From contig CAJFCJ010000023.1 of assembly GCA_904063045.1 (NCBI GenBank), positions 372,001-436,000 of the forward strand: a DNA stretch of 64,000 nucleotides, written 5' to 3'. Shown one piece after another: positions 7,773-11,723 of the stretch; within the stretch, counting starts at the first letter, position 1; every line of letters begins with the position of its first letter. The notes under the pieces were generated by a model. The model was not told the DNA's origin, did no database searches, and saw nothing but the letters and a program-made list of their open reading frames with translations. Source of the stretch: Dimorphilus gyrociliatus (taxonomy: Eukaryota; Animalia; Annelida). A program made the position numbers and the translations under genes.

Positions 7773-8525
7773 TTAGAATTCGAATATAGGGTTAGAATGG
7801 CCTTGAAAATCAATTGTGGCGTGGTAGTTTACCAGGGTAGACTTTTTCCCTCTCTTCTTAAATTTCAAGTAACAAATTAATTGCATAGATAGAACAAAAA
7901 GGGTTTTAGTAATAAGAATCGGAACGAACAAAGTCAAATATATTGATTTTGCTCTACCAGGACATGTTGAACAATTAAATGAAACGTAAAGAAACAAGGT
8001 GAAATTAATTAGACAAAAAGCGATGACGTGATTTAAGTATGAATAGGCAGGCCTAACCTTATACGTAATTACCATCTGTACTGTACCAATAAGGACAATT
8101 ATTGATGTTATAATAACCAAATAAGATCTTTGATAGAATTTTGTCCAGTCGCATACTTTAATCGAACTGGATTGATTCCAACCGAGTAGAGGAGAAAAAC
8201 CTAGTCCAAGAGAGAAATTCCACAATAAAATAAATATGGTTATTTTCTGCAAGTTAGTCAATTGGAAAATGAGCGTGAATCCTTCGGCTAAGATGGCTGT
8301 CACTAAAAATGATTCGGCCAGGAAGCAGTTGGTAAACGAATAGCCGAATAGAGTCTGACAGGTCTTGACAATAGCCCAAGTTCCGGTGAGTAGATGGACG
8401 ATGGCGGATGAAGTGAGTAAAAAGTTTGGTGGATAGAACGATAGTACAAATAATAAAAAGCTTAAAAGACCAATAATACAAGCGAAAATGAGACAAACAA
8501 TAACTGCTGCATTAGGTATGTTCAT
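7773..8525 (-). CDS. Intronless compact 7-transmembrane protein (~250 aa), divergent rhodopsin-class GPCR-like
   Basis: Open frame 7773..8540, first ATG at 8525. Seven hydrophobic segments, a Cys at the top of TM3 (FTNCFL), and a TM4/ECL2 motif FSPLLGWN...VCDW typical of class A GPCRs. No DRY or NPxxY motif. Confidence 0.65.
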   Translation of the reverse strand: MNIPNAAVIVCLIFACIIGLLSFLLFVLSFYPPNFLLTSSAIVHLLTGTWAIVKTCQTLFGYSFTNCFLAESFLVTAILAEGFTLIFQLTNLQKITIFILLWNFSLGLGFSPLLGWNQSSSIKVCDWTKFYQRSYLVIITSIIVLIGTVQMVITYKVRPAYSYLNHVIAFCLINFTLFLYVSFNCSTCPGRAKSIYLTLFVPILITKTLFVLSMQLICYLKFKKRGKKSTLVNYHATIDFQGHSNPIFEF

Positions 8526-9474
8526 CCTCCGCAAGAACAATTAAGAATAATGAAGAAAGAAGATAAGAAAAGAGAGAGAGAGAGAGAGTGAGAAAGAAGG
8601 AAAGATTACCTATCACGCATTATAACGTATTAGATATGAATATAGATATAGATATAATGTATATAAATATGGTGGATGTGCAGATGTATAGAATAAAAGA
8701 TAATGAGAAAGATGGTGAATGTATCCACTCATAAAATTTGCTCTGATTCTTTCCTAGCAGGCAGCATGAAATATAAAACTGATGTATATCAATAAGTACC
8801 ACTGTTTATACTTATAGAGTAATTTCACTTTAAAATGTCATACGTATAGATTAACGGAAAAAATTGTTGCTTGGTGATAAATTGCGTGATTCAGTACTGT
8901 TTGCCGAAAAGCTTTTATTATCTTTATCTTTGTAAATTGTCACTTTACTCACCATGACGGATCGCAAATCTTTCAGATTGTAATTAACCCGATTTTGCAC
9001 TCTTTTTCCTTAGTCTATCATTAGCGTTCCCTATAAGCACGGATGAAAGGATAGGTTAAAAGTTTCTACTAACTCCACAAAAAGCACTTTAGTCGGCAGA
9101 TTTTCGTTAATTTTCTCTTTAATTAGTATCAGTGCAAGTAGATAAGGTTAATATAAGCGTATATCATTTGCGTGACAACCTTTGGCTTTGAAATAATAAA
9201 CGACGAAAGCTCCATCTATTTCTTACAGAACTTATTTCTATATTTGCTTTGAAGATTCATTGTATTAATTAAATAACGAACCACCTCTTAGCCTATACTA
9301 CAACCTTTAATCAGATGTATTTCTAAGGGGTTAATTGTTAAATTCTATGAAGAAGGTAAACATTATTGGTGTTCGAGGAACTTCAATTCGTTTATATTCT
9401 CTGGAATTGTATTAAATATCAAATAATTTGTCTAAATTTGCATGGGAATGTTAGTTTCCATTTCCTTCACACTT

Positions 9475-11723
9475 TTATAAATTAATAAACGGATTCAGTC
9501 CCCGACAAGAGCTTATCAAGCAGAGCAGAATTACTGGATAGAACATAGAACTAGCTTGACGTTGGTCCGTCACTCCACTCTTTTCAAAAAGCCACGTTTG
9601 ATTGCTGTCAATTAAAGATTCACATGGACTGTCATAAAATGTACAACTGTACTTGAAACGAGTCTCGTATGATCTCATATTCCTGTAGAAAATAAAATAA
9701 ACACATGTTTTCATAGAAGTACAAAGAGAAGCGCAATCGTCTGGGTGACCAGTTAAGTGTCCAACAGATTTCTTTTCCGATGCGCACTCCTTAGAGACTT
9801 TCTTATAGTTTTTTAGTAATAATCTCTCTGTTGTAAAAAAGTTGTTGAAGCGAAAAATGGCTATTTTAATCAAATAAAGGTATTTTGTACCTATATCAAC
9901 GAGAACGTGAGTGAAGAGAATATGATGTCGAATCTTTCTAGTTTGGTATTTTACACTATTGACGCCATTCACTTGATATAGCTTAGGACGGTATGTGTTT
10001 GAAGACAATCTAAAATAAAGCAAGCAGACGAATAGTGAACAATAGTGCCTTTAATGATGATTAATAATAATAACATAAGAGAAGTAGAGAGAGGATGAAG
10101 AATGAATGAATGAATGAATGTGAATAAGTACACAGTATATTATATAATGGGTAAATATAGGTATAAAGGTGTACATATATTCAGTATATAAATTTATATA
10201 CCTGTAATAAGAGTCAGGATTCGCTATATCTCTTTTATGCTTGATCATAACATATCGGCTGATGGAGCTTGGCGCTCGACTTACGGTACCACCCAGCCTC
10301 ATCCACATATCATCGTCCTCTCCCCCATACCCGAAAATATTGTTGCTAAATCCATTTATACGGATAAAGAGTGACTTGGAAAACGATAAGGCTCCTCCTA
10401 CCAAACTAGGGTAGAATAATCTTTAATGTTTGAAAGGGGGGTTATCGGTTAGAAATATGTAAGAATGATAAACAAAGGAATTTAAAGAATTTTATTTGTT
10501 CTACTTGTAATCAAATTTATCGACGTTAGCTCCTAAATGTCTTGGGGCGTAATAGCAATTGTAGTAATTTCGTTCGTCTTGCGCAAGCATATCGACATCG
10601 TGAAAAATGAAGCAATCAACTGATGGCCAAAGTTTTGATGCCTCGAGAAATCCTATATTCATCAAGGCTGCTTTATTAAACGTATTATTCCCCTTCTGTT
10701 CTATAACTAGAACTGTATAATCAACATATTGTCGCTTTAAAAATTGCATGTAATGACGTAAAAATATCTTTAAATGGGCTTCTCTATCTCTGAACGGAAC
10801 AATTATGATAACTCTGAAATTGGGTTGGCAGATAGTAGTTTTCCCAGAATCTGTAGGGATGATAAGTAACAAGGTCGGTATATTAATGATTTTAAATTTT
10901 AATAATTGGGTTAGAAATAAGTATTAAAAGGGCTAGAAAGAACAGAGAGCAGGTATGAGGAGTGTGGAGTATACAAGTATGGAATATATACGTAATTGTT
11001 TTTTAAACAGCATCTTGGATCAGTTGGAGATGTTTCTTTCCCTTGAGGAAAGATGCTAGAACGGTGCCGCAATAAACAGGAAGTAAGCTCTGAAAGGTTT
11101 GCAAGAGGAAGTTTAGTCAAAGAAAGTATGACTAATACTTTTCAATTTTACGTTTTCGAAAAGAAATCAACTTTCCCTTAGGGAAGAAATTGATGGAAAC
11201 TTGTTTATAATAATAATCAAGATTCCGTCTTTTTCTTCCTATCTATCTTCATTTCGTATCATTTCTCTTATTTTAACAAAAAATATCTTAACCTCAATGA
11301 AAATTTACCTTTTTATTTTTTTACGTTTAAAAATAATAATGGCATTATAGAAATAATTTTTCACGTTCTCTCTGAAATTCTTTACTAACCTGACGAAATG
11401 TTTTTATATAACAACTCCAGCTCAATCCAGGTTGGCTCTGTCAGATTAATGGAAAAGCATTTGACGATGTCATCACGTATACATTTGCAATTGTTGCTGT
11501 CAAATGGACGGGAATGGTATTTTTCATGACACCATTGGAGATATTCTCTCAGGAAGTAATATTCAGGAGTCGTGTTCACGTGTTTAAGAATGGTTGCATT
11601 TATAATCTCCTCTGATAAACTTACTTGCTTGTAATCATTCGCTACGTAATGAATAGTAATAAAATAAGAGCCATACACGAGAAATATCGTTAAAATAATA
11701 AAGTGTATTTTTTTCAATCTCAT
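9475..11723 (-). CDS. GT7-family beta-1,4-galactosyl/N-acetylgalactosaminyltransferase (type II membrane) with C-terminal PAN/Apple-like domain and hydrophobic tail (~456 aa)
   Basis: Exons 11723-11390, 10850-10505, 10420-10202, 10009-9891 and 9827-9475, with consistent phases. N-terminal TM segment, then GT7 motifs IIVPFRDRE, FNKAALMNIG, FHDVD, GGEDDD, MIKH and VDIG. The frame stays open into a Cys-rich module: C-ASEKK...DDCASLCTSMKTCVYFIF...SCTFYDSPC. Confidence 0.9.

Follow-up and report, generated by a model that had tools for sequence, protein, structure and literature searches.

Substrate choice by Golgi glycosyltransferases is poorly understood, and the built-in lectin domains of the GalNAc-Ts, MGAT4 and B4GALNT3 are among the few mechanisms known. 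In the polypeptide GalNAc-transferases (GT27), a C-terminal ricin-type lectin domain reads the substrate (PMC4432651). A C-terminal lectin domain likewise controls the activity of MGAT4A/B on glycoproteins (PMC9296478), and a built-in PA14 lectin domain does so in B4GALNT3, the vertebrate LacdiNAc synthase (PMC13018970). A PAN/apple domain and a glycosyltransferase domain occur together in Couscous of S. rosetta (PMC6322860). The enzyme described here closely resembles the invertebrate GT7 beta1,4-N-acetylgalactosaminyltransferases, namely Drosophila beta4GalNAcTA/B, C. elegans BRE-4 and NGAT-1, and Bombyx BmGalNAcT, with which it shares a type II anchor, the Glyco_transf_7N and 7C domains, both the DVD and the EDDD motif, and an Ile or Leu where the bovine enzyme has Tyr289 (PMC7943597). 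In the literature we found no paper on a GT7 enzyme with a C-terminal PAN domain. Here we analyze such a design in the annelid Dimorphilus gyrociliatus, within a stretch of 64,000 nucleotides that we refer to as the window.

A five-exon GT7 gene on the minus strand

Reading splice sites and phases from the sequence, we delineated a five-exon GT7 gene on the minus strand (11723-9475), the strand on which all features below are located. Exon 1 (11390..11723) comprises the ATG, a cytoplasmic RLKK, a signal anchor and a stem with four NxS/T sequons, and closes with a phase-1 donor (G/GTTAGT, the slash marking the splice site). MRLKK followed by a hydrophobic stretch of ~20 residues amounts to one signal anchor and a type II topology; this anchor (11646..11708, ~residues 6-26) reaches a Kyte-Doolittle 19-residue maximum of 2.04, against the usual threshold of 1.6. 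Exon 2 (10505..10850; acceptor CTACAG/A, phase-2 donor A/GTAGAA) carries the Glyco_transf_7N part, and exon 3 (10202..10420) the Glyco_transf_7C part, including GGEDDD and the M..H metal ligands. The final GT7 segment is encoded by exon 4 (9891..10009), which closes with ...LFTHVLVDI and the initial base of the following codon, while the coding part of exon 5 (9478..9827) adds a linker, a PAN-like module, a spacer and a hydrophobic tail before the stop codon (9475-9477).

A preliminary description of this DNA had reported a frame from 10009 to 9475 that runs past the GT7 end motif LFTHVLVDIG without a stop. Both limits were recovered, the first set by the acceptor TAG/A at the start of exon 4 and the second by a TAA at 9477-9475, and a single open frame (9475-10023, 182 codons) holds every string quoted at that stage. 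At the ~33% G+C of the window, stops are expected in ~7.5% of codons, so that by our own arithmetic from base composition the 116 open codons after 9827 would arise by chance with a probability of ~1e-4. The description had also stated that vertebrate B4GALT1-6 end within a few residues of VDIG; canonical GT7 genes of the D. gyrociliatus genome do so too, one B4GALT among them ending with ...VDIGKPPQGF.

Between exons 4 and 5, we predict a 63-nt phase-1 intron (9828..9890) that runs from G/GTACAA to TTTTTTACAACAG/A, with GT..AG ends and a pyrimidine tract, and that is stop-free and in frame. The segment 9890-9828 is almost certainly an intron, and the median intron of D. gyrociliatus measures 66 bp (PMC7854359). 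With this segment spliced out, the mature protein most likely reads ...VLVDI-E-RLLLKNY..., without the 21 residues of the unspliced frame.

Protein searches were run exon by exon rather than with the spliced five-exon protein as query. A word-index protein search with the 182-residue frame gave no match, over a length window that left out full-length relatives. We also looked 3' of the stop for a further conserved coding exon and found only a conserved non-coding block, which has no Rfam match and no convincing structure.

The catalytic domain and its predicted donor

Both halves of the catalytic domain were detected well above the Pfam cut-offs: exon 2 matches Glyco_transf_7N (PF13733) with an E-value of 3.7e-37 and 127.4 bits against a cut-off of 27, and exon 3 matches Glyco_transf_7C (PF02709) with an E-value of 9e-17 and 60.9 bits against 23. 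The same exons align with bovine B4GALT1 from the PDB (E 1.1e-26 and 7e-12, respectively). The DVD metal-binding motif (10591..10599) is the equivalent of bovine D252-V-D254, with fhDVDml aligning with fsDVDli. The segments ggEDDD and vMikH align with bovine ggEDDD and rMirH, so that the ligands Met344 and His347 and the E317-D318-D319 loop are present. With the DVD motif, the Met/His metal ligands and EDDD all in place, the enzyme is probably active.

Where the bovine enzyme has Tyr289, which determines the donor sugar, the window gene has a Leu codon (10402..10404), as the alignment of ypsLvgg with yvqYfgg shows; the corresponding chain index, 173, we take to be residue 289, on the assumption that the 286-residue chain has a 13-residue tag before residue 130. 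Enzymes with Ile or Leu in place of Tyr289 are of the GalNAc type (PMC7943597). Under this established residue rule, the Leu points to UDP-GalNAc as the probable donor, and the product would probably be GalNAc-beta1,4-GlcNAc (LacdiNAc), as for other invertebrate beta4GalNAc-transferases.

At the position of bovine Trp314, the window gene has a Tyr codon (10327..10329; FGYGGEDDD versus WGWGGEDDD), whereas the Trp is kept in three paralogs (L053, L051 and L049). Trp314, which belongs to the short flexible loop and is absent from the window enzyme, is a functional residue that is conserved without defining the family, and it is important for the function of bovine B4GALT1. The replacement by Tyr could alter the activity.

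Conservation of the junction in an ortholog and in paralogs

The fusion could, in principle, be an illusion of the gene model or be confined to one isoform: the main mRNA would then stop at the GT7 end or close to it, leaving a PAN exon that is rarely used, part of another transcript or a decaying relic. We consider this reading very unlikely, given the evidence from the window, from an ortholog and from paralogs. In the window, the intron contains neither a stop nor an AATAAA, so that every transcript extending beyond it encodes the module. Neither a Met nor a signal peptide lies between the acceptor and the Cys module; the module thus cannot start a gene of its own.

The ortholog of a second species (L016-L018) has the same layout, and its exon 4 is 72% identical. 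Its intron, at the same place as that of the window, measures 62 nt and contains an in-frame TAA, which cuts both ways. An unspliced message of the ortholog would stop five codons past the GT7 end and yield an enzyme of canonical length, as the illusion reading proposes. On the other hand, the Cys module of the ortholog is in frame only after splicing at the homologous sites, and the frame is kept across these 62 nt. Conservation between the two species begins exactly at the acceptor, with RxLLKNYxK directly after it. Over the coding part of exon 5, pN is 0.37 and pS 0.77 (saturated); for the PAN part, the values are 0.33 and 0.71, with a dN/dS of ~0.19. Synonymous sites are saturated, yet the linker has been kept together with the NxT sequon and all six Cys, which also speaks against a decaying relic. 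Judged from these substitution rates, the PAN module is under purifying selection (dN/dS ~0.2).

In the D. gyrociliatus genome, PAN hits lie 3' of at least seven GT7 paralogs on the same strand (C2:3508021; C4:2365353, 2370152 and 2375418; C24:477457; C23:605277 and 607665), in a survey that left out the twelve weakest Glyco_transf_7C loci. Six of the paralog PAN modules reach the PAN_1 gathering score. In all five paralog junctions that we read, the donor lies exactly one base after the homologous codon, in the same position and in phase 1; an identical junction in five paralogs is hard to reconcile with an illusion of the gene model. Exon 2 of these paralogs is 41-57% identical to that of the window gene, and the six Cys of their PAN modules are spaced as in the window module. 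We read the PAN exons of four paralogs in full; these have two or three PAN modules, with no hydrophobic C-terminal stretch seen, whereas the window gene has a single, more divergent module followed by a hydrophobic tail.

The GT7-PAN architecture is thus not unique to this locus; the window gene belongs to a family of such genes in the D. gyrociliatus genome. Since the family shares the intron position, the fusion is old and maintained by selection. Ortholog conservation and the intron position and phase shared by five paralogs together support the original proposal that the Cys module is attached to the GT7 enzyme as a real coding exon. Although the joining of the exons rests on comparative and splice-site logic, these observations show 11723-9475 to be one predicted gene. 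It encodes a GT7 enzyme of type II membrane topology, to which the last exon contributes one divergent PAN/apple module, followed by a hydrophobic tail of short length.

A divergent PAN/apple-like module

The module (9580..9804) contains six Cys in the spacing C-x16-C-x3-C-x5-C-x19-C-x6-C and ends with ..TWLFEK; an N-glycosylation sequon, NQT (9595..9603), is NET in the ortholog. Its Pfam matches, PAN_4 (E 0.0034, 17.8 bits versus 27) and PAN_1 (E 0.0082, 16.4 bits versus 21.4), both lie under the gathering cut-off, and the ortholog module scores 18.7 bits with PAN_1 and 17.1 bits with PAN_4. A phmmer search of 1.8 billion proteins with the 116-residue tail returned four hits, among them P0004, a genuine multi-PAN protein (E 8.4e-4). 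Two other hits of this search, P0002 and P0003, are bacterial repeat proteins that share a short N-E-T-W-like word and were discarded as spurious. A profile built from the paralog PAN modules gave 15.4 bits (window module) and 16.5 bits, against 10.8 bits for the best of 4000 shuffles, with six of six Cys aligned.

The window module escaped detection by a home-made profile of 20 canonical PAN domains from the genome, and hhalign against these domains gave only a local alignment (21 columns, 22% probability), which places the module far from the genome's canonical PAN domains. A direct search of its own genome revealed no paralog of the module itself, and the notion of a module unique in the genome was dropped once the PAN modules of the GT7 paralogs had been tested. 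The core Cys (C-x3-C-x5/6-C ... C), which would form the two inner disulfides, align, four out of four, with the invariant Cys columns of the 20 genomic PAN domains and with the apple domains of factor XI (FXI). The outer C1-C6 disulfide of the apple type, which joins the first and last residues of the domain, has no counterpart here: the two extra Cys are located 16 residues before C2 and 6 after C5 instead of at the domain ends. Because this shifted pattern also occurs in the modules of the paralogs, it represents a family-specific variant, and we use the term PAN-like.

Structural modeling was less decisive. The PAN fold consists of one helix packed on a curved antiparallel sheet. An AlphaFold model of the module from its single sequence has a pLDDT of 43, too low to be informative. 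A model built on an alignment of PAN domains reached 68, and nearly all of its 21 best VIA matches are of the PAN/apple type (Z 7.7-5.0, rmsd 2.0-3.4), including HGF-N, plasminogen PAp, TgMIC4 and SML-2 (Z 7.0-7.7), a resemblance that is partly circular given how the model was built. With the same model, the top Foldseek hits are PAN domains with E-values of 0.16 or worse. Overall, the Cys module is best described as a divergent PAN/apple-like domain: the PAN/Apple-like assignment first made for it stands in this divergent form, on the strength of the P0004 match (E 8.4e-4) and the paralog profile, and with a Pfam score under the cut-off.

What such a module would bind can be read in two ways. 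By analogy with glycosyltransferases that carry lectin domains, it is reasonable to regard it as a built-in acceptor-recognition module. Alternatively, it may be a protein-protein module that oligomerizes the enzyme, retains it in its compartment or docks it on abundant PAN-array matrix proteins, setting its place and protein targets without binding sugar. Contacts made by PAN/apple domains can be with proteins or with carbohydrates (PMC6322860). Among PDB sequences, the module is matched best by the apple domains of FXI and prekallikrein, and large arrays in the genome contain PAN_1 matches numbering well over 150, both of which would fit protein binding. The galactose-binding PAN lectins SML-2 and TgMIC4, however, fit the alignment-built model about as well as HGF-N (Z 7.0 versus 7.7). 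We regard a purely protein-binding role as a possible but rather unlikely alternative.

The C-terminal tail

The module is followed by an uncharged stretch of 17 residues (ASSMFYPVILLCLISSC, 9505..9555), then by RGLNPFINL and the stop; the position of the stretch is conserved in the ortholog. The Kyte-Doolittle 19-residue maximum of the tail is 1.55 in the window and 1.31 in the ortholog, where the rule of thumb is 1.6 and the N-terminal anchor scores 2.04. In the ortholog, the hydrophobic stretch comprises 14 residues with an internal Lys, and the 23 residues after it include nine that are charged or His; a basic C-terminal flank after the hydrophobic stretch is found in both orthologs. In one of the four ortholog contigs, a shorter A-run truncates the tail, which may indicate either that the tail is dispensable or that the contig is in error.

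The tail had been suggested to be GPI-like, and a GPI-attachment signal would leave the enzyme lipid-anchored at its C-terminus. Inspected by hand, the window sequence does show such a pattern: the small residues S-G come after the module, seven polar residues form a spacer, and the final 23 residues are mostly hydrophobic. The ortholog argues in the opposite direction, since the charged extension beyond its 14-residue stretch is incompatible with a GPI signal, and we therefore consider this reading highly improbable and abandon the suggestion. A short C-terminal membrane segment is possible: if the tail is functional, it more likely acts as a second, short segment in the membrane, its basic end in the cytosol, than as a GPI signal. 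As neither tail reaches the Kyte-Doolittle threshold, the proposed anchoring of the enzyme at both ends is a possibility.

Discussion

The explanation that we favor, and judge moderately probable as a whole, is that of a five-exon GT7 gene in which the single PAN module serves as a lumenal non-catalytic binding module. The module would be located in the Golgi lumen, with which the conserved N-glycosylation sequon and the six Cys fit, and it would act as a binder that keeps the enzyme attached to its acceptors or products, be they glycans or glycoproteins. A more elaborate version of this explanation, which we consider unlikely, is that of a hairpin-anchored Golgi glycosyltransferase: both anchors would hold the lumenal catalytic-plus-PAN unit at the membrane, and the PAN module would recognize either a PAN-rich matrix glycoprotein or a glycan, which might be the LacdiNAc made by the enzyme itself. 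The enzyme and its multi-PAN paralogs would then stand for a so far undescribed and lineage-specific targeting of GT7 enzymes to particular secreted matrix substrates. If hairpin anchoring is true, the second anchor would keep the enzyme membrane-bound even after cleavage of the stem. Golgi transferases anchored in the membrane at both termini are rare, and the single-PAN copy with its hydrophobic tail would be a candidate for one. The unusual abundance of secreted PAN-array proteins in this genome suggests an enzyme-substrate system.

Among known systems, the invertebrate beta4GalNAc-transferases, which to our knowledge end shortly after the catalytic domain, differ from the window enzyme in lacking its extra PAN exon and hydrophobic tail and its Tyr in place of Trp314. 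The GT27 GalNAc-transferases are comparable as Golgi type II transferases with a C-terminal non-catalytic domain, but they belong to another catalytic family and carry a different lectin fold, and the lectin function that is proven for them is a guess for the PAN module of the window. B4GALNT3 and MGAT4A/B are similar in being LacdiNAc-forming or glycan-branch enzymes with a built-in domain; their folds are of the PA14 and MGAT4 types rather than PAN, and the domain order of B4GALNT3 differs from that of the window enzyme. Couscous, from another enzyme family and lineage, carries its PAN domain on the N-terminal side of an MNN2-like mannosyltransferase domain. To the built-in lectin domains known from the GalNAc-Ts, MGAT4 and B4GALNT3, a conserved family of the beta4Gal/GalNAc-transferase type with PAN/apple tails would add a new type of module.

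Gene structure and inferred joining of the cysteine-rich exon

The GT7-PAN gene occupies five exons on the minus strand (11723-9475) of an AT-rich window with ~33% G+C. Exon 1 (11723-11390) supplies the ATG, an RLKK motif, a ~20-residue signal anchor and a stem bearing four sequons, followed by Glyco_transf_7N in exon 2 (10850-10505; Pfam E 3.7e-37), Glyco_transf_7C in exon 3 (10420-10202; Pfam E 9e-17) and the last GT7 segment in exon 4 (10009-9891), which ends ...LFTHVLVDI. Exon 5 (9827-9478) carries the six-cysteine module, with its TAA stop following at 9477-9475. Searches were run exon by exon. In alignments with bovine B4GALT1, the DVD motif is retained, as are the Met/His metal ligands and the EDDD loop. 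The preliminary description had reported a reading frame continuing past the GT7 end, and this was confirmed: all the strings it quoted are present in a single frame of 182 open codons, and the 116 open codons beyond 9827 have a chance probability of ~1e-4, calculated from the window base composition.

Exon 4 and the module are separated by 63 bases that begin G/GTACAA and end in a pyrimidine tract and CAG/A (slashes mark the splice sites); the median intron of D. gyrociliatus is 66 bp, and its published assembly has ~350 scaffolds (PMC7854359). These 63 bases keep the frame and contain no stop codon, so a fused protein would result whether or not they are spliced. Neither a Met nor a signal peptide was found upstream of the module's first cysteine in the exon 5 frame, and the module therefore cannot start a separate gene.

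Conservation in a second species and among paralogs

A library-wide protein search retrieved an 83-residue relative (E 4.5e-17) whose contigs (L016-L018) run from the end of exon 3 through an intron and exon 4 to a further short intron and the module. This gene is the ortholog in a second species; exon 4 identity is 72%, versus 39% to the best paralog of the own genome. The ortholog's short intron, 62 nt long and beginning C/GTAAGT, holds an in-frame TAA, and its module is in frame only with splicing at the homologous sites. Protein conservation between the two species begins exactly at the acceptor, with R-x-LLKNY-x-K. Synonymous divergence has reached saturation (pS 0.71-0.77), but non-synonymous change is lower, at 0.33 for the module and 0.19 for the linker, and the rough dN/dS is 0.19; exon 5 is coding and constrained.

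Comparisons within the own-genome assembly, in which the window lies on contig C23, covered 77.9 Mb in 349 contigs and included 20 GT7 loci, seven of which have PAN-type matches downstream on the same strand. These seven are the copies nearest to the window gene (exon 2 identity 41-57%), and six of their modules reach the Pfam PAN_1 gathering score. At all five paralog junctions read, the GT donor lies exactly one base past the codon homologous to the window's ...DI, the same phase-1 position as in the window gene. The canonical B4GALT of this genome, in contrast, ends ...VDIGKPPQGF, and one further GT7 paralog likewise stops soon after the catalytic domain. Given the lack of an independent start, the ortholog and the paralogs, we strongly infer that the 63 bases are an intron joining the GT7 exons to the module. 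The same three lines of evidence indicate that the fusion is an old feature common to the gene family and not a chance open frame.

No PAN match was found downstream of a tandem GT7 paralog at C2:3504837. The expected place of its PAN exons is occupied by a small open frame (L015:885-1214, minus strand; C2 ~3504220-3504550) whose match to the homeodomain-like HTH_23 is weak (E 3e-4); we would guess it to be a transposase fragment, and this paralog may be disrupted. PAN_1 itself is hugely expanded in the genome, with more than 150 matches scored among 487 candidates, many of them crowded into one 45-kb region (C20:801000-846000) and others on further contigs.

Identity of the module

The assignment of the module to the PAN/Apple class is supported, with limits. 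A profile of the paralogs' PAN modules aligned all six cysteines end to end, with the window module at 15.4 bits and the ortholog at 16.5, versus 10.8 for the best of 4000 shuffles. Against 20 canonical PAN domains from the own genome, the four inner cysteines fall in invariant columns, and the module's ..TWLFEK pairs with their terminal ..YWEK strand. Pfam PAN_1 and PAN_4 also match the window and ortholog modules, but with scores under the cut-offs (E 0.002-0.008). Among 1.8 billion proteins, the sole non-spurious match besides the ortholog was a multi-PAN protein carrying four or more such domains (E 8.4e-4). A two-sequence profile searched against the PDB returned only the apple domains of factor XI and prekallikrein, at a non-significant E of ~1, and the nearest named ESM-Atlas clusters were PAN proteins (0.87-0.89), which serves as a lead only. 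Other results limit the claim: the outer cysteine pair lies off the canonical apple positions, and hhalign against the canonical domains gave a local alignment only. The sole usable structure model (pLDDT 68) has only PAN folds as top matches (HGF-N and plasminogen PAp, Z 7.7; TgMIC4-A5 and SML-2, Z 7.0), a result that is partly circular because the model was built on a PAN alignment. We read the module as a divergent, family-specific PAN-like module.

C-terminal tail and downstream region

Past the module follow a conserved NxT sequon, a polar spacer, 17 uncharged residues and RGLNPFINL. In three of the four ortholog contigs the corresponding position is also hydrophobic, over 14 residues with an internal Lys, and 23 further residues follow, of which nine are charged or His. 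Such an extension misfits a GPI signal and speaks against the GPI-like tail proposed earlier. The residue pattern agrees only moderately well with a short membrane segment whose basic end is cytosolic; Kyte-Doolittle maxima are 1.55 for the window tail and 1.31 for the ortholog tail, whereas the N-terminal anchor reaches 2.04. The protein could be anchored at both ends, which would be topologically consistent. An A-homopolymer run differs between ortholog contigs (6 versus 7 A; L016:415-470 versus L017:790-942), and the contig with one A fewer encodes the shortened 83-residue product without the hydrophobic stretch. The 116-residue form is present in three contigs from other runs, and the loss reflects an assembly error or a genuine variant. 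No such tail was seen in the paralog reading frames examined; the window copy is set apart by its single divergent PAN module and hydrophobic tail.

A single-copy block of ~100 nt (window 9162-9266, read minus; L016:1002-1094), 210-310 nt past the stop codon, shows ~85% identity in the two-species comparison, interrupted by a single 12-nt indel, and exceeds the coding exons in conservation. Stops interrupt each of its three minus-strand frames, although the plus strand has ~32 open codons. The block matched nothing in Rfam and gave no convincing sign of a structure shared by the two species. A 3'UTR or regulatory element, or a promoter element belonging to the next gene, would be possible explanations. 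The GT7-PAN gene is directly followed downstream by a single-exon open frame of 255 residues with several hydrophobic segments (7773-8540, minus strand), for which Pfam gave no match up to E 0.01.

Predicted activity and comparison with known transferases

The window gene has Leu aligned with bovine Tyr289, a site at which Ile or Leu is characteristic of invertebrate beta4GalNAc-transferases and Tyr of galactosyltransferases (PMC7943597); the enzyme is thus probably a LacdiNAc-forming GalNAc-transferase. It also has Tyr (10327-10329, minus strand; FGYGGEDDD) where bovine B4GALT1 has Trp314, a Trp retained in three GT7-PAN paralogs (L053, L051 and L049). Kinetics may consequently differ, and in the window copy only, the substitution may affect how the loop closes or how the acceptor binds.

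Transferases with lectin domains, namely GalNAc-Ts and MGAT4A/B (PMC4432651 and PMC9296478, respectively) and B4GALNT3 (PMC13018970), suggest by analogy that the PAN module would most likely bind the acceptor glycoprotein or a glycan and tune the choice of substrates. A serious rival is that it acts as a protein-protein module, for example by docking on the PAN-array matrix proteins, which are numerous in this worm. Full-text literature searches found no description of a GT7 enzyme with a PAN domain. The nearest precedent is the PAN domain on a choanoflagellate mannosyltransferase (PMC6322860), which differs from the window gene in that PAN is there attached to another glycosyltransferase and here to GT7. 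The GT7-PAN design looks like a new form of a known theme, a transferase with a built-in binding domain.
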